Assembly: GCA_019828565.1 (NCBI GenBank)
Contig: JAHDYR010000011.1
Coordinates: 71,072 to 135,071, forward strand
Source of the DNA: Carpediemonas membranifera BICM
Lineage: Eukaryota > Protista > Fornicata
Length of the DNA: 64,000 bases
Reading direction: 5' to 3'
Shown: positions 13,701 through 63,549 of the stretch, piece after piece
How positions within the stretch are numbered: the first letter of the stretch is position 1
How the letters are laid out: every line of letters begins with the position of its first letter
Notes under the pieces: model-generated
Database searches by the model: none
The model's input: only the letters and a program-made list of their open reading frames with translations
Told to the model about the DNA's origin: nothing
Position numbers and translations under genes: made by a program

Positions 13701-15146
13701 GACTGCTGTCGTGAGTGTGGACCTTACCTGCTCGGCCGAGCCCCAATGAGACTCGACCAGGTGGGTCGGGATGTTTGCGGTGAACCTATGCCGGAGTCGA
13801 TCCAGCTTGGCAAGGCTCAGCCACCCCTGGGTAGGCGTGGATGATGCTGGCCCAGGGTGCGCCTCCGTGATCTGGTTAAGAGCGCCAGGAGGGCCTGTGT
13901 ACACAAATGTACGTGGTTCAGGGCCTTGGCTTGCCTGCGGCGGCGGGCGAAGGGGAGGGTTGGCTGAGTCACCACGGGCTTCGTGCCCGGTCTCTGGCTC
14001 AGCTCTCTCCCCTTCCCCGCCTTCGACGCCCGCCAGGGAGAGGAACTCGGACACTGCGGTGTCGTCGATGTTCCTCTCCTCTGGCTGGGTGGGGGCAACC
14101 TGGGCGGGGGTCTGGCGCGTGGGCCTGTCACCCTGCGGGGCGGTTGCGGGCTGCGGCCCAGTTAGGGCGGCAGCGGAGTCGGTGGGGGCAGCATCGGCGG
14201 GGGTGGGGCTCGGGGGCCGGTCACCCTGCTGTGTGGCTGCAGGCTGCGGCCCAGTTAGGGCGGCAGCGGAGTCGGTGGGGGCAGCATCGGCAGGGGTGGG
14301 GCTCGGGGGCCGGTCACCCTGCTGTGTGGCTGCAGGCTGCGGCCCAGTTAGGGCGACAGCGGAGTCGGTGAGGGCAGTATCGGCAGGGGTGGGGCTCGGG
14401 GGCCTGTCACCCTGCGGGGCGGCTGCGGGCTGCGGCCCAGTTAGGGCGGCAGCGGAGTCGGTGGGGGCAGCATCGGCGGGGGTGGGGCTCGGGGGCCGGT
14501 CACCCTGCTGTGTGGCTGCAGGCTGCGGCCCAGTTAGGGCGGCAGCGGAGTCGGTGGGGGCAGCATCGGCGGGGGTGGGGCTCGGGGGCCGGTCACCCTG
14601 CTGTGTGGCTGCAGGCTGCGGCCCAGTTAGGGCGACAGCGGAGTCGGTGAGGGCAGTATCGGCAGGGGTGGGGCTCGGGGGCCTGTCACCCTGCGGGGCG
14701 GCTGCGGGCTGCGGCCCAGTTAGGGCGGCAGCGGAGTCGGTGGGGGCAGCATCGGCAGGGGTGGGGCTCGGGGGTCGGTCTCCCTGGCGTCGGGCGAAGG
14801 CCTCGGCCCTCGCGTACTCGCGGGCGATGCCCGCATTCGGTGGGCTGGCTGGGCGGGGCGCATGCTGGACCCGCTTCACCAAGGCGGTTACAGACGTCGT
14901 CCTCTGAGGGCCTCGGACAGTCTGAAGGAGGTTCATCCTTCTCGCTTTCACTGGGTCGATGGCGTGCTCGATCATACGCTCAAGAGCCTCGTTCGCACGT
15001 TCGATGGTGAGCGTTGATGTGAACGCCTGATCAGTGGCTGCAGCGTGCAGAATGGCGACAGCATTTGCGACGTGATCGTCGCGGCGGGAAGCTTTCACCT
15101 TGTGGCCGGGGCCGAAGCGATTTGTCGCCGCGTGAACGTAGTTAGT
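10794..15146 (-). mobile_element. CRE-like unit 3, 3' part (interrupted at codons TNYVH by the element at 15147..21487)
   Basis: RT and RLE motifs in ORFs 12126..15146, 11185..12228 and 10794..11441. The N-terminus resumes at 21488. Confidence 0.92.
14090..14785 (-). repeat. 93-bp (31-aa) coding tandem repeat, 7 copies
   Basis: Seven TGPQ units; units 1-3 are duplicated as units 4-6. Confidence 0.9.
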
Positions 15147-16056
15147 AGAAAGAAAGAAATTTATGGTGCTTGGATTCTGACCCCGGACTGAGCTTGTTTC
15201 CCGTTGTCTTGGAGCTGAGTGCCCCGGGGTACTGCCTATTTCCCGTGGCAAACTGGTCAGCAGCGTTTGCCTTGGGCTTTCGGTGCTACTGTCTCCGCGG
15301 AAAGCCGATTCCAATCGCCCCAGAGGCCCTGCGGCCATCTCCGTGCAAATATGCTTTCCTGTCTCCCTGAAAGTCCGGCAACTATCCGGGGAGCCTGGGG
15401 GTCTGTCCTCGGGGCATTGACAGGCAGGATCGTCCTGCAGAACCTTGACTATGACACTCCTTGCTTCCCTGCAGTCCTTGTAGAGCCGTTCAGCCACGGC
15501 ACCCTCTCGTCTGTCCGGTTCCCCAATTCCATGCCCCCTCGACTCTGTTAAGAGGCCTACCCGAAGGCGGGGGAAAGTGACTAAGTCCATGCTGTCTACC
15601 CCGGTTAGGTGGCGTGGGTCAGGGCATGGGTGGTGTACCCCCAGGCACTAGGCCTGGTTGTCCTGTTACCCCTTACAACATTTCGCTTGCACTACATGTC
15701 CTTGGTTTCCCATGTCGTTAACAAGGGCGGCAGGGGCACCTGTGCCCCTCCGACCCCCGTGGCCAGTCCCTGCAGTTTCCTTGGGGTCCCAACGAGTGGT
15801 GCAACCATATGAATATGGATTTCCTTGACCTTATCCTTGCTCTGTCCTTGTTGCATGTCCTTTCTTTCTTATTTCTGGTCTGTCCTTCCTGTTCTTTCCT
15901 TGCAGTCGTTCCTTCCCTTGCTTTGGTTCCTGGCTACCGGGATACGTGGGGCCTTTCCTCACTGATCCCAGGAGCTTAGCACCAGCGAGGGTGGTCCATG
16001 GCTGATTCCTTGTCCATCCCTTCCCGGTCCTGGAGTCAGGGGTTCATGACATGCTT

Positions 16057-17175
16057 CTATTCCACCTTGAAGCTGTTGTAAACCTTTGCCAGTTCCCGTA
16101 GTCCTGCCGTGAGGCCTTCCCAAATGTCTATTTCTGTCCATGGGGTTCGCTGGAGTTCGCTCCACACTCCGTTCCCGAACACTTTGTCCCTTGCCTTTGC
16201 TCCCCTGTTGTTCACTGGGTCGCCCATGCATGCTCTTATAGTCTCTTCCCATTGGTCCGAGCTCTTGATCCTGTTCAGCTTTGAGACTGTGACTGGCCCC
16301 TCCTTCTTTTCATGGGCCAGGTGTGCACCTCGGGTATGGCCAGAGCCACGTCTCGCTCACTTCTGCCATAGTACCGTTGTTCCTTCCATGCTAGTGTGAT
16401 TCCATTGTGTGCTGAGCCCCATACCCCGACCTTCTGAGACTCTACCACCTCAATCTCCGCCCCCTGGATTCCTGGTGTTGTCACTGCAAAGTCCGGGGTT
16501 GATGTTCCTGATGTGAGCGTCCCAGACTTGGGTATGATGGCTTTGAGCCTGTGCTTCTCCATCATATCCTTCCACCGGGTGGATCTTTCCATCTGGCCTG
16601 GGTCGATGTTCCAGTCTCCCATAATTATGGCCTCCATGCTCCCTTTCATGTCCATGATCTTCTGTATAGTGTCCCTGAATCCATCCTTCTCCTGCTTGCT
16701 GTGGCCGGATGGAGGGCCATACACGTTGATGACTAGTATGTCCCTGCCGGTTCTCATTATGCTGGCTTGCACTCTTCCCGATAGGCTGTCCGTTATGCCG
16801 ATGTCCCACTTTGCAGTTGCGTGTGGGCTCACTCTCGTGCCGATGCCTTCCCTTGTTCCCTTCCATCTTGGCGCAGGTTCGTCATTGCCTGCTATGCCTA
16901 GTTGTCGGTTGATGCGGTGCTGACTTTTTGACATCCGCCTTTCGTTTTTCGTTGGCTAAGACCAGGTCCTCTTCCGTCTCCCTCCCTGCTAGTGCGTAGT
17001 CAAGGTCCATGAAGCAATGAACCCTCGTATTCGCCGTTCTCCATGTCTCTTGTATGAGTACTGCCTCTATGTCCTTCAACCTTAGCTGAATCGCCGTTGC
17101 CATAGACGCCGTGAAGTCCTTTCCTCTTCCTATGTGTCCCTCTGTGTTCAGACTAAGTATCTTGTAGGTTACCAT
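16057..17175 (-). CDS. AP-endonuclease (APE)-only ORF2, frameshifted
   Basis: ILSLN, LIQET, INVYGP, MGDWN, TPDFAV, SAHNGI. Ends SFKVE-stop at 16057. Confidence 0.85.
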
Positions 17176-17506
17176 TGCCTTTGTCCTGTTTCCTTATCCT
17201 GCGAATTCCCAGAATTTGGGAGCCCCAGCTTCCCGCTCCTCTCCTGCTATCCTTGTCCTAACAAGGGGCCTAGATGCCGGTCTCGGTGACCCTTGTCAGG
17301 CCAACCTTGTTACCACCTGGTGACCTTCCATTCTTCGGGCAGGGTACTTAGGAGGGGGACGATATGACGTGACCCCCCTTTGGCTGCCGCTACAGCCTAC
17401 CGGCAGTGCATTTCAGCTAATGCCGGGCCCTGGGTGGGAGCCAGGGCTTGTGAATTATAAAGAAAATGTTGCTTGTTCCTTGAAAGAATACTGCTTTACC
17501 ATGTCC

Positions 17507-20500
17507 TTACTCCTCCTCCGTGGACTCCCCACTGCCGCTGCAGCTGTCCTCGGCCTGACTCACTTGCTGTCCTTGTAGACTCTGCATTACCGTGATGAAC
17601 TGGGTCATCAGGTCCATGGGTGAGATCTGCTTGGCCTTCTTAGCCTTCTTGTGCTTGTGCCGGGGGATCGTGGGCTTCTCCTTGCTGGGCTTAGTCGCGA
17701 CGCCGGAGAGCACCAACCTTCCGTGGCCTTGCTCTTGCATGAGTCGGGCAGCCTTGAGCGCTGAGATCTCTTGTTGCGCCTCTGCCAACTGCTTTCGGAG
17801 CCGCAGCTTCTCCGAGTCCATGCCGGTTGCCTGTCTGCTTCCAGACTCCCAGTCCATGTCCTCTTCGTGCCTGCTTCTCTTTCCGCTGTCCGAGTCCATG
17901 ATCCTACTCGTGCTGCCCTCCTTGCGCTTGAGCGTCGTGGAGGAAGAGTGATCCTTGCTGTTGTCCATGCCTCCCTCTGAGCCTCTACCGGCCCAGGTGT
18001 TCCCGCTGAACGAGCCTCTCATCTGCGTTTCCGTGTTGTCCTGTCTCTCCCTGTCGTCTCCTCCGTGGTTACGATCCGAGGTCCTGTTCATGTTACCAGC
18101 TCTGTCGCCGGTTCTGTCGTCAGCTCTGACACCAGCTCTACCGCCGGCTCCGTGTCCTACCCTTCTGTCCTCTTCCCTGTCTCCATGCTGGTCGTGATGT
18201 CCTTGATCCGCGTCCTGGCCGAAGTGCCTGCCCACCATCCTGGTGCTAATCCGCCTCGCCTTTTCCTCCAGGCCGTTGTCGAAGAACCTACTTTGGTATG
18301 GCTGTTCGGACTTTCCGTCGATGGTGGGGACATACGTGATGCCTGGGACATTGACTGTGTTGGCTCTGGGCTCGTCCGGGATAGCTGCCGAGACTAGTCT
18401 GGCCCCTTCCTTGCGCATGCGGCTTAGGATGGTCCCAGCCTCGCTGACCCTGACCATGCCCCAGTCTCTCGGGATGAAGCTCGCCCCTAGGGTGATCCTA
18501 CCCCCTGTTCCTGGGGGCCTTGACGTTGACTATGACCTTCTCATAGTCCCTGAGGCTCTCTGCTAGGTCGTCGCAGCCCCAGACTCCTTGATGAGCCGTA
18601 GCCTCCTTCGAGGGCCACCACTCGTATAGCATGGCCATGGTTATGATGTCCTCCTCCCTTGCTGCCCCTAGGCCCTTCCTGACGCGTACCATGCGGAGCT
18701 GGTTAGCCGTGGCTCTTTCCATGATGGTCCATAGCGGGCTTCTCTCCAGTACACCTTCGTTGTCCATGATTGTGAGGGGGGGCCAGTAAGATGCCCTTCA
18801 TGCCCAACAGAACCTCCCCGAACCCGAAGCCGATGCCGAAGCGGTGTCCGTTGTCCGGGACTACGAGGATCCTGTCGCCGACTTCCCTGCTGACGTCCCT
18901 TGCGTCCCCCGATCGGGTACGTGCCGAAGATCTCAAAGGTGTCCCTCCTTGTCGCGAATTCCGGGCCTCCCATGATATCCATGCCCGGCTCCGCCTTCCC
19001 GACTGCTTCCATGGTCTTGTCGAGTGCCTTACCCATGTAGTGGTAGACGTCTGGGGTGCTCATCCTCTCCTTGCATAGGGCCCCTGATCCTGGCTGTGAA
19101 GACTACTGTATCCGCCAACCCACAGTGGTAGCAACCCGCGGTGTGTCTGTGGTACGGACAGACTCCCTTGGGCTCGCTCCTGTTCTGCCATCCATTTGAC
19201 CATGTTGTTACTGCTTCCAGGTAGTTGGCCTTGTCGAGGTTGTCCCTGAGGTTTTGGCCAGCCTCCTCCTTGCCGTTGTTCTCCAGGATCTCTGGTAGCT
19301 TCTTCTCGTCCACCAGCCTAGCTTGGAAGAATTCCCTGGTTCCTTGCTCCAGTCCATTTGTGGGGTTCGTGAGGAGGAAGCTTTCCATCTCCACCCCCTT
19401 TGCATACATGATTATCTTCCAACCCTCCGACCTTTCGATCCTTGCCAGCTGAGCCGCCAGGCGGTTGGCCCAGTCCCTGAAAGTATGTATGTGCTTCTCA
19501 TACTCGATCGGCGGCCGCCCCGTCCCGACCTCCACGAAGGTGGCCGGCGGCAGCCCCGTCACTGCCCATGCCGTGTACCTCGCTTGGTCCATGCTTGCTG
19601 CCGGTATGTCCTGGTAATACAGGCCATGCCCGTGTCCAAGAATGTCCCCAGTGCTGAGGTCAAAGAGTACGATCCCGCCCTCAACCGGGATGGCAGGGAT
19701 CCCTGCCTTCTTGACGCCAGGGTCTGCGCACTCGAAGTCGATGGCTCCGATCACCAGTCGTTTCTCCTTGTCCTTTCTAGGCATCCTCGGCGGCTGGCTG
19801 CTGACCTTGTTTGAGTCGACCTCCTCGTCCTGGTCGATCTTGCCTTGGTTGGCCCCCGACCATGTCCTTGTTCACTTCCAGGAGGCTGTCGTCGAGGCTT
19901 CTTCTGCCGGGCATGGTGGCCTGCTGGCGTCGTTCCTCCTTGTCCTTGACATGTTGCTCCTCGTCTCCGTCGATGACCGTGCTAGCGGACGACCTGTCCA
20001 GATCGGCATGTTCGTCCCTATTGCTGCGGACCGAGGTGGCCTTGAGCACTTCCAGCCTCACCTTCCGGAACGGCGGCTCGTTGCTAAGGGGGTCTCCTCC
20101 CCTTCGCCCAGGATATTGGTTCTGCCCTTCAGGTAGATCCCTGACTTGTTCCATGCTGCCTGCCATATGGCCGGGGCCTCCGGTGCCTGAAGCCTGAGGA
20201 TGTCCCTAGCCTCCTCCATGAAGCGGCTGATGGACCATGCTGACGTGTCGCTTAGCTCTAGGATGACCCTGTACTTGCCGTCCTCTTGCTCGTAGGCCAC
20301 TCTGGTGACCGGGCCTTGGTTTGCCGGATCCCATACCTTGTCGTAAGGCACGCCTTCTACGGCCTCGTCTCCATGAGCCCCTGATACCAGTATGAACGAC
20401 CCTTCGGCCTTCTTGACGCTGTCCCTGTCTACATCCCATTCGATGGGCCCATCTTCCTTCGGCTTGAGGATCGCCGTCTCGATGTCCTTCTCAGATGGCC

Positions 20501-21014
20501 ATCTTGCCATGCCAGTGAAGCCCGCTTTCAGCGTCTTGGGCTCCAGTGCCTGTGCCATGTCCTTTGCTTCCTCGTCTCTGGGGTTGAGCGCCTCTGTGAG
20601 CATGTAGAAAAGGTCGCGGAGGCCGTGGATGCCGCATGGGTTCCTGAGGATGATGTCCTTGTTGTCAGTGACGCCGGTTGCGAAGAGGATGCGTCTGGCG
20701 TTCATGATTACTTCCTTGCGTCCTTTGGAGTTCGCATTGAGCGACTTTCCTGTAAACTTGCCTGTTCTACGAAGAAGTAGAGTCCTTGAATCGTTCCTTT
20801 CAGCGAGGAAGCTGTCCAGTAGTTCCCTGATGTCCTCCCACTGCTTCTGCGTGGAATCCCTGATCCTTGTCGGTATTTCTACCTGCATTGTTGAGTGCAA
20901 AATTTCTCCCCTTTTCCTAGTCCATAAACTGGGTCGGAATTTTTGGGTCCGAAAGTCGGGCCACATGTACATATCCGGGTGAGGTCTCCGTCCAGGCCTT
21001 CCAGTTTCTCCCAT
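17507..21014 (-). CDS. ORF1 polyprotein (read as several frameshifted pieces) with central DEDDh/MAEL-like domain and C-terminal coiled coil
   Basis: Overlapping same-strand ORFs 20058..21014, 19777..20166, 19029..19784, 18668..19063, 18498..18767 and 17507..18457. Treating them as one ORF is inference. Confidence 0.65.
19029..19784 (-). CDS. Maelstrom/arenavirus-NP-like DEDDh 3'-5' exonuclease domain with ECHC zinc site
   Basis: Motifs IDFE, PVE, AKGVEME, LVDE, CPYH, HCGLAD. A homologue lies at 59848..61028. Confidence 0.75.
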   Translation of the reverse strand: MPRKDKEKRLVIGAIDFECADPGVKKAGIPAIPVEGGIVLFDLSTGDILGHGHGLYYQDIPAASMDQARYTAWAVTGLPPATFVEVGTGRPPIEYEKHIHTFRDWANRLAAQLARIERSEGWKIIMYAKGVEMESFLLTNPTNGLEQGTREFFQARLVDEKKLPEILENNGKEEAGQNLRDNLDKANYLEAVTTWSNGWQNRSEPKGVCPYHRHTAGCYHCGLADTVVFTARIRGPMQGEDEHPRRLPLHG

Positions 21015-21487
21015 TGTCCATGCTCCGAACTATATAGGCCATTCTTTCAAAAAGGCGCGGTCCTAAAAATGCGTCGCCCTTTTCTGAGTAGCGGGGCCTT
21101 TCTGTGTAGTTGTTGTTGCTTTGTTCGTAGTCTCCTTTTAGCCCCTATCGACGGCCCCTGTTTCCCTTCTGTGCTGCCCTTCCTTCCTTGTGGTCTTGAC
21201 AAAACCATGTTGCCGCCGGTGCTAGCACCGGCCCCCGACGGTTGTTTTCCTTATCCTTGTAAACATACGTTCCATGAAGACACTTTGATTCCTTGGTATG
21301 GGCGTGGAGCTCCCACTCGCGCCCAGCGGTATGCCCTGATAGCAACCCTTGAATGTTCAGACAGGAGGCCAAGGCCGCTCCTTCTGAGCTCCATGGGGCA
21401 CTGCCCTATCCATATAGGCCAGGCCTGTTGGTCCTTGTCCATCCATGATCGAAGTGTTTCCACTTTGCTGAAATCATTGGTGAACTG

Positions 21488-21785
21488 GTGAACGTAGTTA
21501 GTTATCCAAACCAAGTTGCTCACCGTGAAGAAACGCTTGTAATCCGAAATAAGGCTCAATAGACGTTCTTTGTTCATGCAGATCTCAATAAAGGCCTCAG
21601 TATCCTTCGGCCAAGAGTTCTTCGAGCTGGAGGGATGGAAATCGTTAATCCACCGCAGAAGAGCAGCGAACAGCGCTAATCGCTTGTCAATAGACGTACC
21701 AGGTCCTTCATCGGATGTATGGCAGGATTCGTCGCCTTGCGGCGGCGAATCGAGCAACTTTCCTCTGGATACCATGGCCGAATTT
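21488..21785 (-). mobile_element. CRE-like unit 3, displaced 5' coding part
   Basis: Encodes MVSRGK...WITNYVH, matching units 0/4/5. Cut at 21785 by the YR element. Confidence 0.9.
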
Positions 21786-21828
21786 GGCAAGGCCAGCGGA
21801 GCCAAAACTTCGGCGCGAGAGGTCGAGG

Positions 21829-53105: not shown

Positions 53106-54273
53106 GTACTCTTGGCAAAGAAAGAAAGAATTTAATGTGTCCTGCTACTCGTCCTGCTGTGTAAGCTGAATGTCACAGTTTGTGTCACCCCTTCGAGGAA
53201 CGCCTAAGCGTGTTGGTACCTCTACAGAGCACACCTAACACTTCCTAAGAGGGCGTGAACAACGGCCGTCAAGGCCTAGCTGGTACGCTAGAGGGATCCT
53301 ATACATGGCCACATTAATACCCCCAAAGTTAGGCTAACCCAGGTCTTACTCTTAGGGGCCCTTTGGGTCCCAGGTCTGCCTGGCACCTACAAAGCCTTGC
53401 CCTGCACGCTGCTGTCAGGGACCTTCCGTACGTTTCCCCTCTCCCCCGGGTCCCCTAGGGAGGTCCTGGAGTTTCCTCGACCCGCTCGCCATGTTTCAGG
53501 CACCCGCCAGGGCGGGGTCGGGTCTAGAGTTCGCCGTACCAGCTGGGCCGGGTTAGGAACCCACCGACGCCGCGTAGGTAGACTTCCACGGACTTGCCGG
53601 CTGCGTTCGGGCTCATCTAGCGCTGTCCGATTTCACTCCAGGTTCCCATTATCGGGGGGGAGCTCCCAGGGGCGGTTGCCACGTCTTCCAGTGTTCCTGG
53701 CTAGGCGCCGGGCCACATCAGGATGGCCCTGCCTTCCCGGCAGGTTACCGACGGAGTGGGTAGCTTCTTGCGTCATCCAGTACCTCCGCCAGTCTGCCAT
53801 GCATCATCCTCCTGGTGCGCCCCCACTGTGTGGGGAGGGGGTACCCCCTTGCGCGCCGGAGGGATGCGCCGGACTGCTTGTCCGGACGCTTGCGCCCTAC
53901 TGGCCCAGCTGTTTTGCCAGGCCTTCCCTATTTCGTGCTTGTTGTATGCGGTTGTCCCTTAGTGGTCCTTTGCAGCCTTCCCTCCGCCTGGCGCTACCGG
54001 AACATGTGGTGTTGTCCTCATTGGTTCCAGGCCCGCTGCGCTTGGGGTCGGTGCTCGGGCCACCTTTCCAGGCCGCCCTGTGGGTTGGGCCTGTCCCCTC
54101 TTGGTGGTGGGGGAGTTGTTTCAAGTGTGATGCAGGCATCAGAGTGCTCCCTTGCTGCGTGGGTTGGGTTGGGTGTGCGGCCGGGCGCTACCGGAACATG
54201 TGGGGGGAAAACACCTCCCGCCGGTTCCAGGAATGTTCCGCCCTGTGCCTTGTCTTCACCCAGGGCTTTCCTC

Positions 54274-57200
54274 CTAAGGGTCTGGGCCTGTTCTGAGGTT
54301 CATGAGGGCCTTTTTCCCGCATAATAGACCCTCCTTCACTGTTTCATCCTCCTGTTGCAGTAGCCAGTGGAGCTCCAATATGGCCCTGGAGTTATACCAC
54401 TCCCCATCTGGGCCGTGCCGCAGCCTACTTGCCATGGTGTGTGTTGCCGCAGCTTCCCAGCACTGCTCCCACCCACTTGGGCGGCCGACGCCCTGGCACT
54501 CCGCTATGATGTGGCTTTGTGTTCCTAGCGGTTGGTCTTCCAGCCACCCGGCTACTGCAACTAGCGCCTGCGCCTGGGGGGGGTATAGTTGGAGGTAGTT
54601 GATCAATTCGCGTTCGGCTGCGAGTGTGCATATCGGGCATATTCTTTTGGATACGGTCGCAGAGCATTTCCTGCCCAGGGTACCTCCTGCTTATGATGAG
54701 CGCGGCTCCTCGAGTTGTGTGGCTGTTGCTAGCGGAGGGGAGCGTGTTGGAGGCTGTTGCAACTACCCTCTTCAGCTCCCTCCTGAGCATCATCTCCCCT
54801 CTGATAATCTTTTGGTTTCTTGGGTGCTCTCCCGCCTGCCATTGTTTGCATTGCCTCCGCAGCTAGCACTTCGGCGGCCGCCTTGGCTGTTCGGCTACCT
54901 TTGGTGGCGATGTCTCGTGCTGTCATCTTCCATCCCCCGGCTATTGCTCTGGGTCTGGGTCCGTGAAGGTCGCTAGGGGCCAGATCTAGTACGTTGTCTG
55001 CCCACTTGTTCAGCTTTCCGATAACGGACTTGGGGTTCGCTCTTCCCCAGTCGAAGTCCGCTAGGGGCGATGGGCGGTCAGGGTCCCGGGCCGATTCGCG
55101 GATTCTAACCGCTCTTACACCCATGTCCGCTTCCCAGCACATCCATCCCATCATCAGGCGGGCGACACCCCCTCCACCGGGTCCGGTTCCCGCCATGAGT
55201 CCTCGCCAGTCGTTCCAAAGCCTTCTGCCTCCTGGGACTTGGCCCCAGATTTCGATTCCGAATTCGATCTTTGGCCATAGGAAGGTGCGGAGGATGGACT
55301 CGGAGACAGCCGCGGGCGTGGAGCCTTTAGTCCATCCCACTCTCCGGGCGAGGGCGATGTACTTGTTCGACTGTTCTCTTTTCTTTGCGATGCATGCGCT
55401 GAGCGGATGAGGGCCACTTGCTATCCAGAGTCCCAAGTATCGGCCTGACTCCGCTGCTCGGGTGGCCTCCCCTTGAATTCGCACTTCCGCATTTGGATTG
55501 GTACTTATGACGATGTTCTTTCCTGGGCTGATACACAGCTTGTGTGCCACTATCACTTCCACCATTGCGGCGGTGAGGGACTCCGCATCATTTTTCTTTC
55601 TTTGCCGAGATGCTCGTATCGTCTACGAACATTGCTATGATGCCATTCCCGGGTCTGTGGTGGGTGGGGGAAGCTTCGGGTCTGGTATCTCGCCGTACTG
55701 TATTCTGAGTGACGCCTGGCTAATCCAGTTGGCCGTAAATAGTATGAATAGGGTGGGGGCGACCACGCAACCTTGCTTGACTCCTAGGTTCGTTTCGGAC
55801 CATAGGTCGGATCCCCTTACCGCAATGTAGGTCCTCTCCATTGTGCTTTGTACTGCTCTGACTAGGTGGGGGTGTACACCCATATTGATCAGCTTGCTGA
55901 CTAGGATGTCCCTGGGAACCGTGTCGTACGCCTTTGCAATGTCGAGCAGCACGCTGGTCCGGTCTCCTTCTTGGTGCAGTTGGGTTAGGAGGGCGATGTG
56001 GTCTATGACTGTCTTTCCCTTCATGAAGCCGATCTGCTCTCTGGGGGTGTGCCTCTCAACTGTTGGTTTGAGCCTCCATTTGAGTACCTTCCCATATGCT
56101 CGGTAGAGGAGGGGGGGTGAGTGAGATGGGTCGGTAGGATCCTGGCAGTAGCTTATCTTTCCCTACTTTGTGTATCGGGGAGATGGAGGCGTACTTCCAC
56201 GTGGTGGGTAGTTCCCCAGACTCGTATACTTTCTGGAAGAGGCATGTGATTGCCCTGTAGGCCGCCTGGGGGAGGTCTCTCAGACATTCGCCCGTGATAC
56301 CATCCGGGCCTCCTGCCGATGATTTCTTCAGGGACTTGATGGCGGCCGTGACCTCCTCCTCCGTGGGGGGTTGATCAGTTGTTTGGGCCGCCGGGATCTG
56401 GTCCCAACTAGGTGCTATGCCACTACTGACTTGGGCGTATTGCCTCTGCAGCTCCCTAGCTATCTCGTTTTCCCTTGTTAAGATCGACCTCTTTCCTCTG
56501 AGCATCGCCGGTAGCCCTGCGTGTTGTTTCTCGTTCCAGAACCTGTGGACCTGGTTTGCTATGACCTTCTTGGTGGTCTTATACCCTGCCCTTGCGCTGT
56601 TTTCCACCTGCTGCGTCCACTCCTCCTTGAAGCTTTTCCATGACTTCTGGAGCTCGTTGTTCAGGGTCCGCTTGATTTCCGCGGCCCCCGCTTTGTTCCA
56701 TCGGGCTAGGATGAGTTGCTTCCATACGTTCTCCGGGATCCTTTTTGCGATCTCCCTGGTCTGACGTTCCTAGCGGAAGTTTGAAATCCCACCGATAAGA
56801 GTTCCCGTATTTGGTACTCGATTGTATCTACATGGAGCTCCACATCGGGTTGCGGCCATTCCCTTGCCCTTTCCCCGTTGCGCTCTGGGAGGACATTCCA
56901 GGTGGTTGTTCCTGGGATTTCCAGCTTGGGTTTGGCCGGTTGTTTCTTCCAATGCGGTTCGTCCCAGGTTAGCTCCACTGCCCTATGGGGGGAGCCCCAA
57001 TGCCCCATCTCAGCTTTGTCAATGACTCTAGCTTTGGCCCTCGTGATCCCCCCAGATACAGCTGCATAATCCAGCGTCGAGGTGGTATTCCCACTCATGT
57101 ATGTGTGAGACGAGGGGAAAACTAGGTCTAGATTGTTTCGCTGTAGTGTGGCGCTGGTGGCATGGCGCAGGCTCCGCGGGTCACGGTTCCAGTCCCCCAT

Positions 57201-57648
57201 GATGATTATCTCGAAGCCGTGGTACTCTCTGACGATGTTTTCCAGCTGTTGGTCGAAGCGGTCTAGCTCCCGCTGCGCTGCGGTCACTTGGAGGGGCGTA
57301 TATGTTGATGACTGCGATAGCCCTTGAGGTTTCGAGGATGCTAACTTGAACTCGGGGGTTCGTGCCGTCAGATACTCCTACATCCCAGGTTGCCTGTGAA
57401 TGTGGGCTGATCACCGTGGCTACGCCTAGGTTAATCTTGCCCTTTCGAGCCTTGATGGGTTTGGCGTGCCCTGCACATGCGTATTGTAGGTCCGCCCAAC
57501 AGGGGACTACGGAGTTACCGTACCTGAATGTTTCCTGCAAGAGGAGGGCGTCCGGGCTCGTGTGCTTGCGAAGCGCTACCGCTATAGATCCGCTGTAGTC
57601 TTCATTGCCCGTTAAGTGTCCTTGGCTGTTAAGGGAGACTATTCGCAT
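54274..57648 (-). CDS. LINE ORF2: AP-endonuclease + reverse transcriptase (frameshifted in this sequence)
   Basis: IVSLN, LQET, NIYAP, GDWN, TLDY, SPHRAV; GPDGI, YRPISL, LDIAKAYDTV, GVKQGCVVAPTLF, MFVDD, RYLGL. Confidence 0.92.
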
Positions 57649-58375
57649 TCAGGTTGTTACTGCCTTAACCTGCACTCCTTATTCTGCACTACCTGCACAC
57701 TTTCATCTTGTTGTTGGGGTTTAGCATCTGCATAGTTGCCTTCCCAATGGGTGAGCGCCTATGTCGTCGTTGTTTAGCACGTTGGGTGGGCCGCTTCCCG
57801 CCCTGTGGGTTGTTGGTGGGCGGCCCGGGTAGGCGTCTTCTTTGCCCTTGATATTTCTCCAGGACCCAGAAGCATGCGCCATTCACATGGGGTGCTTGGC
57901 CAGAACGGCTGCTTCCTCCAGAGTCCCCAGACGTGGCCCAGGTTCCCTCTTGGAGCTGACCTAGGGTGTACCACCCCTTTCACTGGCCGCGCCCTCGCGG
58001 TGCTTGTCGGGACTTTCGTGCCAGTCTCTATAGCGCTTCTGGCCTCGCACATTGGCAGCATCGTTACCTAACTACGCATAGGTGGGAGCGACTCCTTTCG
58101 GCGCCCCTCCCAAGGCTGGAGTTCCAGCCTGCCGGACAGGCGGGTCCTCGATGGCGTTCCAACTGCCTCTTACCCGCCCCCCGGTCCCTGCGGGGAACAG
58201 GGGTTTTAAGAAAAGAAAAGTCACCCGGGCATTGGCGCCAGTACAGCCCTTCTGGCGGGCTCCAACGCTGCACCTATTCCGGCGCCTTCACTTCACCTAG
58301 TCCTACACTAACGTGCTATATATACACATCCCTTTAGACTCTGCACTCTTCCCTCCACTGCTTTGGTATGGCTCG

Positions 58376-61300
58376 TTACTCATGCATCTCTTGATCTGGT
58401 TCGTCGCTCTCGTGCTCCATTCCGATGCGTAGGAGCTCTTCTTCCTCGTCGCTTCCGTTGGCGGCGGCAAGCGCCTCCTCAAGCCTGGCCTCGAGGACTC
58501 TGTTTGTTTCACGGAGCCTGAGGCTGGCTCTTTTGAAGGCCTCCGATTTCTCGGCGATGCGCTGGAGGCGCTGGCGCTCGCTCGCTCCTCTTGCTAGGGC
58601 TTCCCTTTCCTTGGCCAGCTGGCCTTGGAGGTGGGTAACCTCGTTGTTCAGCCGGGGAGACTTCCTCTTCGTAATGGCTCATGATCCGCTGCCGCTCTTC
58701 TTCAGCTCTTCGCTCCACCTCCGCTTGGAAGAGGGCTTGGATGTAGGCACCCATCTGATCGACCGTGCCCAGTCTTGGGTTTGGGGGCCTCTTCCCTTCG
58801 GGGCCGCCCGGCGGGGGCCGGTGCTCGAAAGCCTGGCTCAGAGGCATCGCCGGGGGGGTTGGCCTCTTTGTGAGGCGTGAGGATCGCCTGTCCCGGGGCC
58901 GGGTGGGGGGGGTTCATTCCTCTGGGAGTGGGGTAAGCAGGGCTTACCTGGTGCGCATTAGGGGTGATGATTGCCCTTGGGGTGGGGTGGGCGGGGGTTA
59001 CCTGGCGCGGGTTGGGGGTGGGGTTTGTTTCCCCTTGGAGCCTGCTGGGGGAGGGGGTGGCGTTCACCTTCCTTTGAGATGGGTTCGGGGTGGGGACCTG
59101 TCGGTTCTCGGTGAGCGGGCCCTCAAGCAGCCCTAGGGCCGGCCACTCCATGCCTTGGTGAATCTCGTTGGTGAGCCTCTCCCGGTGCTCTTCGAGGCAG
59201 GCTCTAAGCGCGGCCCTTGCCGCGGTCACAGCCTCTTTTTGCTCTCGCTGCGACCTGTGCCCGTCGTTGTTCTGGGTGTACGGGAAGTCCCACAGGCGGA
59301 TGGGGGGTAGTCTCATCATGGGACTGCATCCCAGGGCCAGGGTGCCGTCGTATTGGGGGTTCGCCCAAGGCGCTCGGGCGGCGTCTTCCAGGCTCCCCTC
59401 CTTGTTCTACTGTGCGGATGCCCCAGTCTAGGGGAAGAACCGAGGGGAAGAAGTTGACATAATGCCTGGGCCCTCTATCTTGGCGCCGGAGTTCCGCGCT
59501 TACGATGAGTTTCGGGACGCCCGCTGGTGCTCTATCGCCGATGTTCACCAGGCAGTGGGTGAGCCGGTGTCTCAGCTGCTGGGCTGAGCCCCCATGCATC
59601 ATGTCATGCTTATGGAGCGGGACCAGCGAGGCTGCCTGGGATAGGGTCAGGAGCTCGGGGTGGAGTTTGACCGGGAGTTGCTCCATGACCCTGGGGGTCC
59701 AGGGTGGTACGGTTGCCATAGAAGTCTGGCCAGTAGCCCTTCTCCCTTGCTACGCGGCGCCTACCGTTCCACTCGGATAGGAGCTCCACGACCAGGGGTC
59801 TCGTGCTTGGGCAGGAGTCCGGGCTGAGAACGGCTACGCCCCTCCTTTCAAGGACCCTTAGGATTCCTTTTCCTGTGCTGAACTCTTGCGCGGTCGTGTT
59901 GGCCATGTGGATTTCCTTCGGACGCGGCTTGGTGGTAAAGATCACGTGCTGTAGTTGCCCCCAGGGGTGTGATGACCTCTCGCCCTCTATGGCGGTTGAT
60001 CTCTACAGCCAGGTCTGGGACCCCGTGTCCTACTCTAATGATGGGGCTTTGTGCCCCCGTCACTTTCCCTCCTCGTGCGATTAGTTCCGCTCCCACATCA
60101 GCCCAGGTCCACGGGTTATACAGCATGTGGATGGCCAGGGAGAGTCTTGTGTAGAAGAGCGATACATCCGCAAGCGCACAGTGACAGTAGGCTGGTGCGT
60201 TTCTGTGATAGGGGCACAGCCCCTTGGGTTCCCTTCTCCTTTGCTGGTCGCGGGTCCAGACCTTGGCCTGCTCGGCTGCCTTCTGGTCCTCCTGTGGGAG
60301 GGTCTCTCGGACCGGGCGGTCCTCCTGGGAGGGGGGGTAGAAGAGGGTGAGGGTGCTATTGAGACGGGGGTACACCGCATCTAGGCCGGCTTCATCGATT
60401 AGGTGGGTGGCTACCCATGCCCTGGCCGTGGAATCCGGTACGTATTTGGCGCTCGTGAGGACACTTCGTTCAGCTTCCACCCCTTTGGCAGTCAGGTGGA
60501 TGAACGCGTTATGGTGTCCTTCGAGACGCCGGAGGGCATCGATCATTTCCGCGCACCATGTGGTGCTGTTTGGGAATGTGCTTTCGAATCCCTGGGGGGC
60601 CTGCCCAGTGGTGATGTCGACGAAGGTGGCTGGGGGCAACCGTGGAGAATTCTTGAGCTCATCAGAGCCTGGTCGAGGTCGGCCACCCGAATATCTTCGC
60701 CTAACATCCCGTGCAGACTGGCGACGATATTCCCGTTGGCGGGGTCAAAGACTATGACCGCCCCTTCGCATATGACGGCCTCATCCCCCGCCTTGGATGC
60801 GGGTTTGGACGCTTCGAAGTCAATGCACCCGATCAGCATCCTCTTGCCCTGCGGGTTGGTGAGCGGGCAGGACGGGGGGAGTCTGCTGTTGGCTGACAGT
60901 TCTCTACCCCTTGGCGGGTTGACGTCACTATCACTGCCAGGGACTCTTCTGGCCGAGTCGTCGGCGTTGGGCCGGGGGCCATCTTGGGTACCCCCGGTCT
61001 CCGAGCCCGCACTTTCGCCGCTGGGCATGGTGGCGGGGTTCCCCCGCTAGTTGGGTTCCAACCTGCTTCGCCCCCCAATGAACGAGGGGGCGACTGGATC
61101 GCCCATGTTGGGTTGGCCAGTGGTCGGGTCGCCGCCGTTGTGCGGGGCAACGCCCAGGTTGCCCCTGGTGGGTGGGTCCGTCCTTGGGCCGCCGTTGGGC
61201 GGGCTATCACCTGCACTTGCTCTGCCATTATTCGGTGGGGGGGTGACCGGGTTGCCCTCGTGGGGTGGGTTGTCGGTTTGCTCGTTGCCCTTGGGCGGGC

Positions 61301-62722
61301 CGTCCCCTGTGGATTCGGTGGCGAGCAGCTTGGTACCCTGGTCCGCCATCCAGATGTTTGCGATCCTGCTAACGAGGGTGGAAGCGTCGCAGAGGTCCGG
61401 GTGGATGAACTCAGGGGCCGGCATTGGCCGGGTAGTAGTATCCCATGCGGCCCACAGCTCTTTGAAGCCCGGAACCGTCCAGCGAAGCACTAAGTCTTCG
61501 GCCTCACTGCGCGCTAGCTCGTCGCCGGCAATGCTGAGGGCTGAATCCGTGGGTGTCCTGCTAACCAACACAGGTCTGGTCACCCCATCGGTCCTGCTGT
61601 AGACAGCTATCGCGGAGAACATGCCACCTTCCCAGGGCTTGACGGCCTGTCCGTCAAGGGGGGGGAAGCCTCCTGCTGGGGGTCTGGGGCTAAGGGGGAC
61701 GGGGGCATCCTCCCAGGCCCGACCTAGGGCCGCCCACTTGTTGTTGACGTTGTTGTGGGCTCTGTCCGCACCTGGCGCTTTCGCTGAGCCGGCTGTGGCT
61801 TGGCCGCCTGCCTTGAGGAGCCAGGCGGCGCTCTGCTGGCCGAACCTTGTCCTGATCCCAGGCCCTGTGAGGCTTTGGTGACCTGCGGCCTTGAGAGTGC
61901 TGGCAACTAGCTCGAACAGCAAGGATCTAGCCGGTGGCGGGCTTGATACCTTGAAGTTGGCGGCGTTATCCCTCGAGAAGATCACTGTGGTGTTGTTGCA
62001 CTTGGCGAGGATGGAATCGGCTGCTCTTCGGACTTTTTGCCACTCTTCGGTCGTAGCTAAGCGTTTTCCAAGCTTGGTGAGCTCTGTTCCAGCTTCGTCT
62101 ACATCATTCCCCCGGCCCATGGCTTGTTGGGGGAACTTTGTGTTTGTGGCCGAAATTGGTCTCGAAAAGTCGGAGGGGGAAAGTCGGCATGAATCCCCCG
62201 GGGGGGAGCCCTCCCTGCCCGCCTCGCCTGTAGGCGCCGTTGCCGGCGCTCGTAGGCTGGGAAACCCGGGGTCAGGGAGTAATCGGCCTTGGAGGTGAAC
62301 ATCACGAAGGCCGGCCCGCATCGGGGCAGTGGCCGGCGCTGTTGGTCCTCGCGGTGGATTTTCCAGGCCGCCTGGCTTACCCACCATGGCCTTCCGGTTA
62401 TCAGGGCGTAGTGGTATAGCAGGATGTCATTTTCTAGCATTTGGGTAGCCGTTATTTCCCTTTCTCGGCTGGGATTCTGCCACCACTGTAGCTGGTGATC
62501 CACTCCTGGGGGGAAGGGATCCTTTATCTTGCTATACCCTTTTAGGTCGCCGTACATCCGGATCAAGTCGGCGATTTTCTCGGTTCTCGTGCGCTCCTTG
62601 CGTAGAGGAGGCCCTATGGGATGCTCGGGGAGGAGATCTTCTGCTCGGGCAACGTACCCGCCCTGTGGGTTCCTGGGAAACGCGTCCATTGCCGGCCGGT
62701 GGCTCGGATGAGGAGTGTGCAT
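58376..62722 (-). CDS. LINE ORF1 polyprotein (frameshifted pieces) with central MAEL-like nuclease and C-terminal coiled coil
   Basis: Chain of overlapping minus-strand ORFs with the same layout as 17507..21014. Confidence 0.6.
59848..61028 (-). CDS. Maelstrom/arenavirus-NP-like DEDDh exonuclease domain
   Basis: IDFE, ICE, PPATFV, AKGVEAE, LIDE, EPKGLCPYHR, HCALAD across ORFs 60543..61028 and 59848..60639. Confidence 0.78.
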
Positions 62723-62757
62723 TTTAGTGCTCCATCACCTGATCACACCATAGCCTT

Positions 62758-63549
62758 GTGGCGTTGCACGTTGGCCTTTCCGAGCAGGGGCGGGGAGGTG
62801 TGGCCTATTGCCTGAGATGCGGGGTCGGTTGCGAACCTTGTAGCCATAATATGAGTTCACCACATTTGGTTCCTGTTACACCCATTAGCCCGCCTGGCGA
62901 CTACCACCAAGGCCCAGGCATTGCCGCGGCGGAGCCCCAGACCCCTAGAGAGGGCTGGGGGTCGGATTCTTCCACCACATCGTCCTCTGTGGAGGAGCTG
63001 CCCCCCGGGTCATTGGCATTGCCTTCCTCCCGCAGCGCCCGCGCCTCTGCTCCCAACCTGGTGGGATGGGGCCTCAGGAGTCCTCAACGCCGACTCTTCC
63101 GCTCCTTCCAGGGGAAGGCCGTCCCCCGCCGCCTCCAGCTGGCCCGGTCCCCTGCTTCCCCCGGTCCTCACAACGGCGAGGGCGCTGCCCCGTTTGTCAC
63201 GCCATTGGCTTCCTCCCCAGCTGGGGCTCGCACCGTTCGTCAGCCTGTGGCTCCACTTGCGTCAGCCCTCGACGCTCTCAGCACTTTGGATCGCATCGCC
63301 ATGGACTGGCACTCGTGTGCCTATGCCTTCGTGGACATGCTCCATGAGGGGACCGACGAGGATCAGCCTGTCGAGAACCTACAGGCCATTTTGGCATTCC
63401 AGCGCACTTCTCAGTCCCAGATGGTTATGTATCGCAGCAGCAGGGGCGCTCTTGAGCGGGCCCTTAGGCAGTATGTCCCTTCGGTTTCCCATTTCCTTGC
63501 CGACGGAAGCCCCTCAGTGGAGTTCCTGGGCGCCGGGACTCCTCAGTAA
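62758..63549 (+). CDS. Hypothetical ORF divergent from LINE ORF1 (likely ATG 62851)
   Basis: 263-codon ORF with a helical-looking C-terminal third. No recognised motif. Confidence 0.35.
   Translation: MALHVGLSEQGRGGVAYCLRCGVGCEPCSHNMSSPHLVPVTPISPPGDYHQGPGIAAAEPQTPREGWGSDSSTTSSSVEELPPGSLALPSSRSARASAPNLVGWGLRSPQRRLFRSFQGKAVPRRLQLARSPASPGPHNGEGAAPFVTPLASSPAGARTVRQPVAPLASALDALSTLDRIAMDWHSCAYAFVDMLHEGTDEDQPVENLQAILAFQRTSQSQMVMYRSSRGALERALRQYVPSVSHFLADGSPSVEFLGAGTPQ

Follow-up and report, generated by a model that had tools for sequence, protein, structure and literature searches.

Two highly diverged long interspersed nuclear elements (LINEs) in a 64,000-nucleotide stretch of the Carpediemonas membranifera BICM genome (contig JAHDYR010000011.1 of assembly GCA_019828565.1, positions 71,072 to 135,071; hereafter the window, in which all positions below are given unless a contig is named) were found to encode homologous domains within the protein of their first open reading frame (ORF1p). 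LINE ORF1 proteins are RNA-binding chaperones, with esterases in some clades. We consider it very probable that the domain studied here is a DnaQ-like DEDDh 3′-5′ exonuclease with the zinc site of Maelstrom (MAEL) and the arenavirus nucleoprotein (NP), that it entered ORF1 a single time before the observed LINE families diverged, and that it was then passed down with the element under purifying selection. The two domains, their motifs, and their predicted functional residues are as follows:

19029..19784, minus strand: 251-codon open reading frame (ORF), the exonuclease domain of ORF1 in the first LINE (family A; ORF1 amino acids 411-645, out of frame afterwards)
19731-19742, 19680-19688, 19533-19550, and 19383-19403, minus strand: first-domain motifs on the N-terminal side, IDFE, PVE, PPATFV, and AKGVEME, respectively
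19305-19316, 19146-19175, and 19110-19127, minus strand: first-domain motifs on the C-terminal side, LVDE, EPKGVCPYHR, and HCGLAD, respectively
53640..62930, minus strand: second LINE (family D), 99.5% identical to L047 with 30 indels; APE endonuclease at 56892-57648, reverse transcriptase (RT) at 55152-56739
60142..60878, minus strand: exonuclease domain in ORF1 of the second LINE, about 32% identical to the first domain
60813-60824, 60765-60773, 60619-60636, and 60469-60489, minus strand: second-LINE motifs on the N-terminal side, IDFE, ICE, PPATFV, and AKGVEAE, respectively
60391-60402, 60202-60231, and 60166-60183, minus strand: second-LINE motifs on the C-terminal side, LIDE, EPKGLCPYHR, and HCALAD, respectively
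Predicted catalytic residues of the domain: D16, E18, E134, H220, and D225 (from the model and from invariance in nine lineages)
Predicted zinc tetrad of the domain: E35, C209, H212, and C221 (from the sequence pattern only)

The two window domains are homologous as judged by BLASTP, which aligned their C-terminal 166 amino acids at E = 7e-24 (30% identity) and their N-terminal 94 amino acids at E = 1e-18 (37% identity). When the full family-A ORF1 was compared with the second LINE by tblastn, the sole part to align was ORF1 amino acids 408-643, in agreement with the initial annotation, which had seen little similarity between the two elements elsewhere in ORF1. Of the seven motifs listed there as common to both elements, all were located in the first domain (19029-19784, minus strand) and six in the second (60166-60824, minus strand); the place of PVE is taken in the second LINE by ICE, with Glu as the only common residue. 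In an intact family-A copy on another contig (L041), amino acids 411-650 of an unbroken ORF1 (1,167 codons) correspond to the domain, and the ORF2 that comes next has 372 codons. The second-LINE domain is divided by a C5/C6 homopolymer difference at 60631 into the frames 60543-61028 and 59848-60639.

The fold of the domain was predicted by AlphaFold from a 12-sequence alignment, with a mean predicted local distance difference test (pLDDT) score of 77.7; in a model of the full ORF1 the nuclease domain was predicted at pLDDT 85-95 and the remainder of ORF1 poorly. The order of secondary structure elements in the model (b1-b2-b3-aA-b4-aB-b5-aC, five strands, RNase H-like, with strand 2 antiparallel) fits that of DEDDh enzymes, and all 291 PDB chains matched at Z ≥ 8 were DEDD exonucleases, with top Z scores of 11-13. 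By VIA-align the top match was Bombyx Maelstrom's MAEL domain (5af0_C, Z 13.0, 187 amino acids, root-mean-square deviation 3.6), and other MAEL structures were found at Z 12.6 (9nhc_F), 12.2, and 11.6 (Drosophila MAEL). Generic DEDDh enzymes (the DinG exonuclease domain, epsilon, ERI2, 3′hExo, RNase T, and TREX1) were matched at Z 11-12, and the NPs of lymphocytic choriomeningitis virus (LCMV) and Lassa virus at Z 9.2-10.7, with the highest residue identity of the structural matches (16-19%). The structural alignments extended over 187-197 amino acids for MAEL versus 162-179 for the other DEDDh enzymes. Foldseek returned TREX1, 3′hExo/ERI1, REXO2, DnaQ, and MAEL at E ~1e-4, with TREX1 and 3′hExo on top, while an ESM-atlas shape search and protein-language-model neighbors pointed to RNase_T/Rv2179c-like exonucleases, with the arenavirus nucleoprotein at rank 26. 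A viral fold library yielded generic phage and giant-virus DEDDh exonucleases only, and no arenavirus signal was found there. Overall, the predicted fold is that of a DEDDh exonuclease beyond reasonable doubt.

Within the modeled fold, the ExoI motif corresponds to D16-x-E18 on strand 1 (residues 9-21) and ExoIII to H220-x4-D225, which opens the last core helix (222-237). ExoII was placed by secondary structure only, at E134 in helix 132-139 after strand 122-128, and the invariant D159 is located after strand 5. The candidate zinc signature is composed of E35 on strand 2 (residues 32-42) and of C209-x2-H212-x8-C221-x3-D225, for which the pLDDT of loop 205-221 was 64-68 when the domain was modeled alone and 74-92 in the context of ORF1. 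In Bombyx MAEL, the structural zinc ligands are E137 (strand 2), C290, H293, and C302, with D122 and N124 on strand 1 and R306 at the position of the ExoIII Asp (PMC4408791). The C-x2-H-x8-C-x3 spacing of the LINE domain is identical to that of Bombyx C290/H293/C302/R306. Because of this match, and because the cellular DEDDh enzymes surveyed have no zinc finger (PMC7968707), the domain was assigned to the MAEL/NP type.

In the Carpediemonas genome the domain occupies more than 160 places and belongs to at least seven LINE families; a second organism has it in at least four lineages. A tblastn search of the 24-Mb genome with the ORF gave at least 163 matches, which fell into families about 100%, 50-54%, 35%, and 31-33% identical to the query. 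The other organism is represented by assembly GCA_002919055.1 (run SRR4018424; L049-L055, short contigs), where at least four diverged LINE lineages carry the domain in ORF1; as the best domain identity to the Carpediemonas genome is 34%, this assembly was taken to derive from another organism, a point that an empty DNA search would not prove on its own. The architecture of its elements comprises an ORF1 of 1,203-1,250 amino acids holding the domain and then an ORF2 with APE endonuclease and RT. Uninterrupted ORF1 frames of 1,129-1,250 codons were found in L041 and in the four GCA_002919055.1 lineages, the frame was open across the domain in families B-E, and the position of the domain within ORF1 was constant in every lineage. 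APE endonuclease followed by RT was detected in ORF2 of families B, D, E, X50, and X51 and of full-length family A, and the RT of families B and E matched Pfam RVT_1 at E ~1e-32.

Other observations were made on these elements. A further family with the domain, found via a foreign homologue as query and about 31% identical to it, has at least 17 copies (G000:C8:229895-230524, C6:526713-527342, C9:344541-345170, and at least 14 more) and open frames of 1,418-1,748 amino acids that might represent an ORF1-ORF2 fusion. Two apparent families at "78%" and "72%" identity were rejected as family A itself, 99% identical at the DNA level and translated through frameshifts. On one contig of GCA_002919055.1, a chromo-domain ORF lies downstream (L050:9824-10660). 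Two further blocks of ORF1 are conserved across families A, B, and C, at amino acids 75-255 (an N-terminal helix/strand region, pLDDT 58-79) and about 770-850 (with a "FIPRxWG" motif) of L041; no recognized fold was found in either block. In the ORF1 model, a long C-terminal helix (amino acids 1063-1093) may form a coiled coil.

Conservation was examined across nine lineages with uninterrupted domain frames, namely A-E from the Carpediemonas genome and X49-X52 from GCA_002919055.1. Domain identity among them was 23-68% (mean 33%), and 25 of the 240 columns were invariant, including D16, E18, E35, E134, D159, C209, H212, H220, C221, and D225; H53 was retained in eight lineages. These ten invariant residues bear out the proposal in the initial annotation that catalytic and zinc residues are retained in distant families. 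The hypergeometric probability for the invariance of the key residues (P = 2e-10) should be read as indicative only, as conservation itself had partly guided their choice. The groups (X50,X51), (D,E), and (A,B[,C]) were recovered by maximum likelihood from the domain as well as from the APE endonuclease. Most of them were supported at 95-100%, (D,E) reached 81/85 with the APE endonuclease, and the internal branches were long (0.85-1.9 substitutions per site). This congruence argues for a single old acquisition followed by co-divergence, as opposed to recent separate captures.

Rates of nonsynonymous (dN) and synonymous (dS) substitution were compared by rough NG86 estimates for X50 and X51, the one pair with measurable dS. 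The N-terminal half of the domain was 72% identical in this pair, with a dN of 0.23 and a dN/dS of 0.13, versus a dN of 0.41-0.79 and, where dS was computable, a dN/dS of 0.33-0.66 for the remainder of ORF1. By these estimates, no other part of ORF1 evolves as slowly as the domain, whose dN and dN/dS are the lowest, and between distant families it is the sole part of ORF1 that can be aligned. The matching trees and this slow evolution mark it as an inherited core of this LINE clade and not a recent capture. The initial annotation had likewise proposed a core function of a retroelement lineage instead of a one-off gene capture, a view that gains from the nine lineages in two organisms, the congruent trees, and the lowest dN. 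Its claim of purifying selection is supported by the X50/X51 comparison, but its argument that the nuclease was retained despite loss of the RT carries no weight (see below).

Several results weigh against this reading. There is no sequence or hidden Markov model link to MAEL or to any DEDDh family, as found from (i) Pfam (PF13017 and PF00929 included), with no relevant match at E ≤ 10 for all 12 alignment members; (ii) phmmer and profile hmmsearch of the PDB with the domain, with no relevant match; and (iii) a profile search of 5.8 billion proteins, which returned one Carpediemonas model only. An exhaustive phmmer search of 1.8 billion representatives returned just 13 proteins, from Carpediemonas or from assembly GCA_002919055.1, and the only named database relatives are hypothetical proteins of C. 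membranifera, e.g., J8273_1798. The MAEL/arenavirus-NP type suggested by the initial annotation is consistent with the fold search and with the spacing of the zinc motif, but has no such sequence link. Moreover, other DEDDh enzymes are within 1 Z unit of MAEL, such that the fold alone does not pick out MAEL, the ExoII acid is Glu and not Asp, and the zinc site is a candidate based on sequence spacing. With regard to selection, dS was saturated or undefined in most family pairs, including the two window families, for which the dN/dS test (itself rough) is weak because of this saturation; certain ORF1 blocks outside the domain match it in conservation within families A, B, and C. With regard to expression, no run on record as RNA contained the stretch, and the Logan contigs, which place the family in short-read data where one copy is not separable from its 40 or more sisters, do not show expression.

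The activity of the domain was considered by analogy to proteins with the same residue set. Such proteins, amoeba MAEL and Lassa NP, are metal-dependent 3′-5′ exoribonucleases (PMC4408791, PMC7968707); the amoeba protein, which has both the DEDD and ECHC motifs, is active with Mg or Mn, and Lassa NP has both motifs as well (PMC4408791). By this analogy, the LINE domain would be an active Mg2+/Mn2+-dependent 3′-5′ exo(ribo)nuclease. ORF1p coats the RNA of the LINE, and within the LINE ribonucleoprotein the nuclease would act in cis on the nucleic acids of its own element. There it may trim the 3′ end of read-through transcripts back to the (TTTC)n terminus used for target-primed reverse transcription, remove the template RNA, or both, and we give a role of this kind about an even chance of being correct. 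Trimming or template removal is favored because the 3′ terminus of these LINEs is a fixed (TTTC)n without poly(A) and because the elements have no RNase H domain (PF00075 gave three matches genome-wide).

A different role, which we hold possible but clearly less probable, is that of counter-defense: small or double-stranded RNAs through which Argonaute-based silencing is guided to the LINE would be degraded by the ORF1 nuclease, much as the arenavirus NP exonuclease removes dsRNA and thereby blinds innate sensing, or as siRNAs are degraded by ERI-1. Two Piwi-domain (Argonaute-type) genes are encoded in the genome (G000:C7:87108-88037 and C65:23790-24737), and an RNA-silencing pathway is thus probably present. 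Furthermore, the closest proteins by motif are the NPs of Lassa virus and LCMV, whose exonuclease suppresses innate signaling (PMC7968707), and MAEL, a factor of small-RNA pathways, and the arenavirus nucleoprotein is among the language-model neighbors (rank 26). This substrate is conjectural, however, and NP is linked to the domain less strongly than generic DEDDh enzymes are, in structure as in the language model. Competing elements, too, would profit from a diffusible anti-silencing factor, yet each family keeps its own copy fused in ORF1p, and for this reason a cis-acting role fits better. A broader scenario, in which active LINE-borne MAEL-type nucleases link cellular Maelstrom to arenavirus NP, animal Maelstrom is a domesticated and inactivated ORF1 nuclease, and the LINE domain counters silencing by degrading Argonaute guides, is in our estimation a long shot.

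Turning from the role to the identity of the domain, we regard it as unlikely that the LINE took up a generic DEDDh exonuclease (ERI1/RNase T/TREX-like) whose Cys and His residues are independent and which has no kinship to MAEL/NP. The closeness of the structural scores (Z 11.5-12.2 for 3′hExo, ERI2, RNase T, epsilon, and the DinG exonuclease domain, within 1 of MAEL), the Foldseek ranking led by TREX1 and 3′hExo, the RNase_T and Rv2179c-like neighbors in the atlas and language-model searches, and the lack of a PF13017 match would all be in line with such an uptake. What speaks for the MAEL/NP type instead is that the Glu on strand 2 and the C-x2-H-x8-C, its last Cys beside the ExoIII His, reproduce the MAEL spacing and are invariant in nine of nine lineages, that zinc fingers are missing from the surveyed cellular DEDDh enzymes (PMC7968707), and that the MAEL alignments are the longest.

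It is decidedly improbable that the domain is a catalytically dead RNA-binding module of ORF1p, in the manner of animal Maelstrom, whose MAEL domains bind single-stranded RNA without the DEDD residues (PMC4408791). An RNA-binding domain is needed by ORF1p, and no RRM or zinc knuckle was found by Pfam or in the ORF1 model; however, none of the five DEDDh positions varies among lineages with identities of only 23-68%, which makes an inactive role unlikely, and inactive MAEL loses DEDDh positions, e.g., at N124 and R306 in the Bombyx protein. A separate and recent acquisition from a host gene by each of the two window families, which the initial annotation had named beforehand for MAEL as the outcome that would speak against an inherited core, is scarcely credible: no supporting point was found in the part of the 160 or more genomic matches that was inspected, the domain and APE trees are congruent with internal branches of 0.85-1.9, the position in ORF1 is the same everywhere, the same architecture is found in a second organism, and the Pfam MAEL model (PF13017) has no match over the whole genome at E ≤ 10 (control genomes being uninformative for PF13017).

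The first domain lies within a family-A LINE copy of the following composition:

15147..21487, minus strand: RT-deleted family-A LINE copy, in the order 5′ untranslated region (UTR), ORF1, APE-only ORF2, and 3′ UTR with (TTTC)n end
17507..21014, minus strand: ORF1, broken into six frames (1,167 codons in the intact copy, L041:1658-5158)
16060..17175, minus strand: ORF2 remnant (372 codons in L041) with APE endonuclease and linker, by Pfam Exo_endo_phos_2 and tblastn
16125..16128, minus strand: junction left by the 2,322-bp deletion of the RT, with breakpoints at positions 4565/6888 of the full-length relative L040
15148..16059, minus strand: 3′ UTR of the family-A copy, 98-99% identical to full-length family-A elements
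15132..15146, no strand: target-site duplication on the 3′ side of the element, GTGAACGTAGTTAGT on the plus strand, with the identical 15-mer again at 21488
21488..21502, no strand: target-site duplication on the 5′ side of the element, a 15-mer match to 15132

The limits of the element given in the initial annotation (15147..21487, minus strand) are exact, as judged by the flanking 15-nt target-site duplication and by alignment to the intact copy L041:1184-7508 (6,343 nt at 99.45% identity; 14 mismatches, 11 indels). Consistent with a LINE, target-site duplications were found at both copies (15 nt in the window and 17 nt, CACCTAGTCAGAGCAGT, for L041) and no long terminal repeats (LTRs). The window 3′ UTR and the 3′ end of the RT-bearing family B share 74% identity across 700 nt. 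The site of insertion is itself another retroelement, which makes the window copy a nested insertion; this host element has Pro/Thr/Ala-rich tandem repeats and an RT (Pfam RVT_1, about 12179-12776), and the ORFs 12126-15590 (1,154 amino acids) and 21251-21805 (184 amino acids), both on the minus strand, are chimeric read-throughs over the insertion junctions. The intact copy L041 is likewise nested, in the RT gene of a LINE from the second family of the window (flanks L041:1-1197 and 7496-8680; G000:C27:63000-72999).

By tblastn, no similarity to RT was detected after the APE endonuclease in the window copy, and the initial annotation had taken one of its two families to have lost the RT. For the family this was wrong: the window copy carries a 2,322-bp deletion, across whose junction the APE endonuclease and linker are fused to the last 30 or so codons of the full-length ORF2, and the element in L040 (2000-10000, minus strand), 99% identical to it at the DNA level, has an extra 2.3 kb that encodes the RT. 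The RT segment of family A occurs at least 40 times at 97-100% identity, and at least 20 of 43 family-A sister copies (about 99% identity) have it some 3 kb downstream of the domain, a lower bound with 40 of 130 candidates scored. The identical deletion breakpoints were found in three copies (window 16125-16128, L041:6540-6543, and L043:2148-2151) at different sites with different target-site duplications; thus, the deleted form itself has retrotransposed. Family A is autonomous and the RT-deletion subfamily, which has the 3′ UTR of its parent, is non-autonomous and presumably mobilized in trans by the 99%-identical full-length relatives. Diverged by 0.2-1%, the RT-less copies are too recent for their retention of the nuclease to be informative on selection.

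The interruptions of ORF1 were traced to single-base differences. ORF1 in the window has 1-bp homopolymer indels at 20092, 19857, 19084, 18910, 18782, and 18505; 10 of the 11 indels relative to L041 are single bases within G, C, A, or T runs, as are, at short base runs, nearly all of the 30 indels between the second LINE and L047. Across 29 family copies (L001-L029, 104 kb), 128 indels were counted versus 247 substitutions, with 74 of the indels inside homopolymers. As this ratio is typical of long-read error in repeats, the homopolymer indels are probably errors of the long-read assembly; Logan short-read contigs that are without the extra base near 18776 and 18906 are suggestive only, since they could stem from sister copies. 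The 251-codon ORF was ruled out as a gene, as it is the middle of the 1,167-codon ORF1, cut at 19857 and 19084. Among public gene models, J8273_1798 spans the frameshifts by way of "introns", and a "splicing factor U2AF" model (P0006) includes a piece of the exonuclease domain; such odd models arise because the homopolymer indels break the ORFs. In practice, ORF-based readings and gene models of transposons in this assembly mislead, as with the "251-aa ORF" and the "RT-less family". A 151-nt contig from a microbial-mat metagenome run (coded X4) is identical to window positions 19612-19762, a hint that such mats are home to this species or to one very close to it.

The enzyme predicted in these LINEs is of a type new to ORF1, and it places a nuclease of the MAEL type in a new, mobile context. 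To our knowledge, an intact DEDDh set together with the Maelstrom/arenavirus zinc site has so far been seen only in a few protist proteins and in arenavirus NP. No report of a LINE ORF1 with a DEDDh or MAEL-type domain was found in the searchable literature, where the enzymatic ORF1 proteins of LINEs are esterases only and the DnaQ-type exonucleases of retroelements are DEDDy ORF3 proteins only (PMC5408684). A conserved 3′-5′ exonuclease of ORF1p would either add an accessory activity of a new sort to target-primed retrotransposition or provide a retroelement counter-defense. It also provides (i) an abundant, naturally diversified set of sequences for the origin of Maelstrom and the arenaviral exonuclease, and (ii) a tractable protein with which to study the task of this kind of nuclease inside retroelement particles.

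When compared with known systems, the domain resembles the exonucleases of the DnaQ superfamily that are 3′-5′ accessories of bdelloid-rotifer LTR elements (Juno and Vesta) and of Athena/Terminon Penelope-like elements, in both as ORF3 (PMC5408684). The bdelloid ORF3 exonuclease is common to several element families and has a Cys-His-Cys motif in some copies (PMC5408684); it is, however, DEDDy (RNase D-like), encoded in a separate ORF3, and acquired several times, whereas the Carpediemonas domain is of predicted DEDDh/MAEL type, located in a LINE ORF1, and apparently inherited from one acquisition. Like the SGNH esterase ORF1 of CR1, L2, and RTEX, it is an enzyme domain of a LINE ORF1p kept across a clade, although the SGNH protein is a lipid/ester hydrolase and the domain studied here a predicted nuclease. 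The window copy is similar to HAL1-type LINE derivatives in that an internal deletion removed the RT and the form was copied, to at least three sites, in dependence on full-length members; it differs in retaining ORF1 and the APE endonuclease and in the very young age of the deletion (99% identity to the parent). With Entamoeba histolytica EHI_192630 and animal MAEL (5AF0, 4YBG, PF13017), the domain shares the predicted DnaQ-like fold and the zinc signature of E plus C-x2-H-x8-C, and with the amoeba MAEL protein the retention of DEDD(h) catalytic residues alongside ECHC. It is unlike MAEL proteins in its lack of sequence or profile similarity and its Glu as ExoII acid, and unlike MAEL host proteins, with their HMG or other partners, in being located in the middle of a LINE ORF1 (1,129-1,250 amino acids), multi-copy, and mobile. 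As in the NP of Lassa virus and LCMV (Arena_ncap_C; identity 16-19%), DEDDh residues and an E-C-H-C zinc site are predicted together. NP differs in its lower Z scores (9.2-10.7), in the spacing of its zinc ligands, and in host and replicon type, and its known role is the removal of double-stranded RNA for immune evasion; nonetheless, both would place a DEDDh nuclease within the nucleic acid-coating protein of an RNA-templated replicator.

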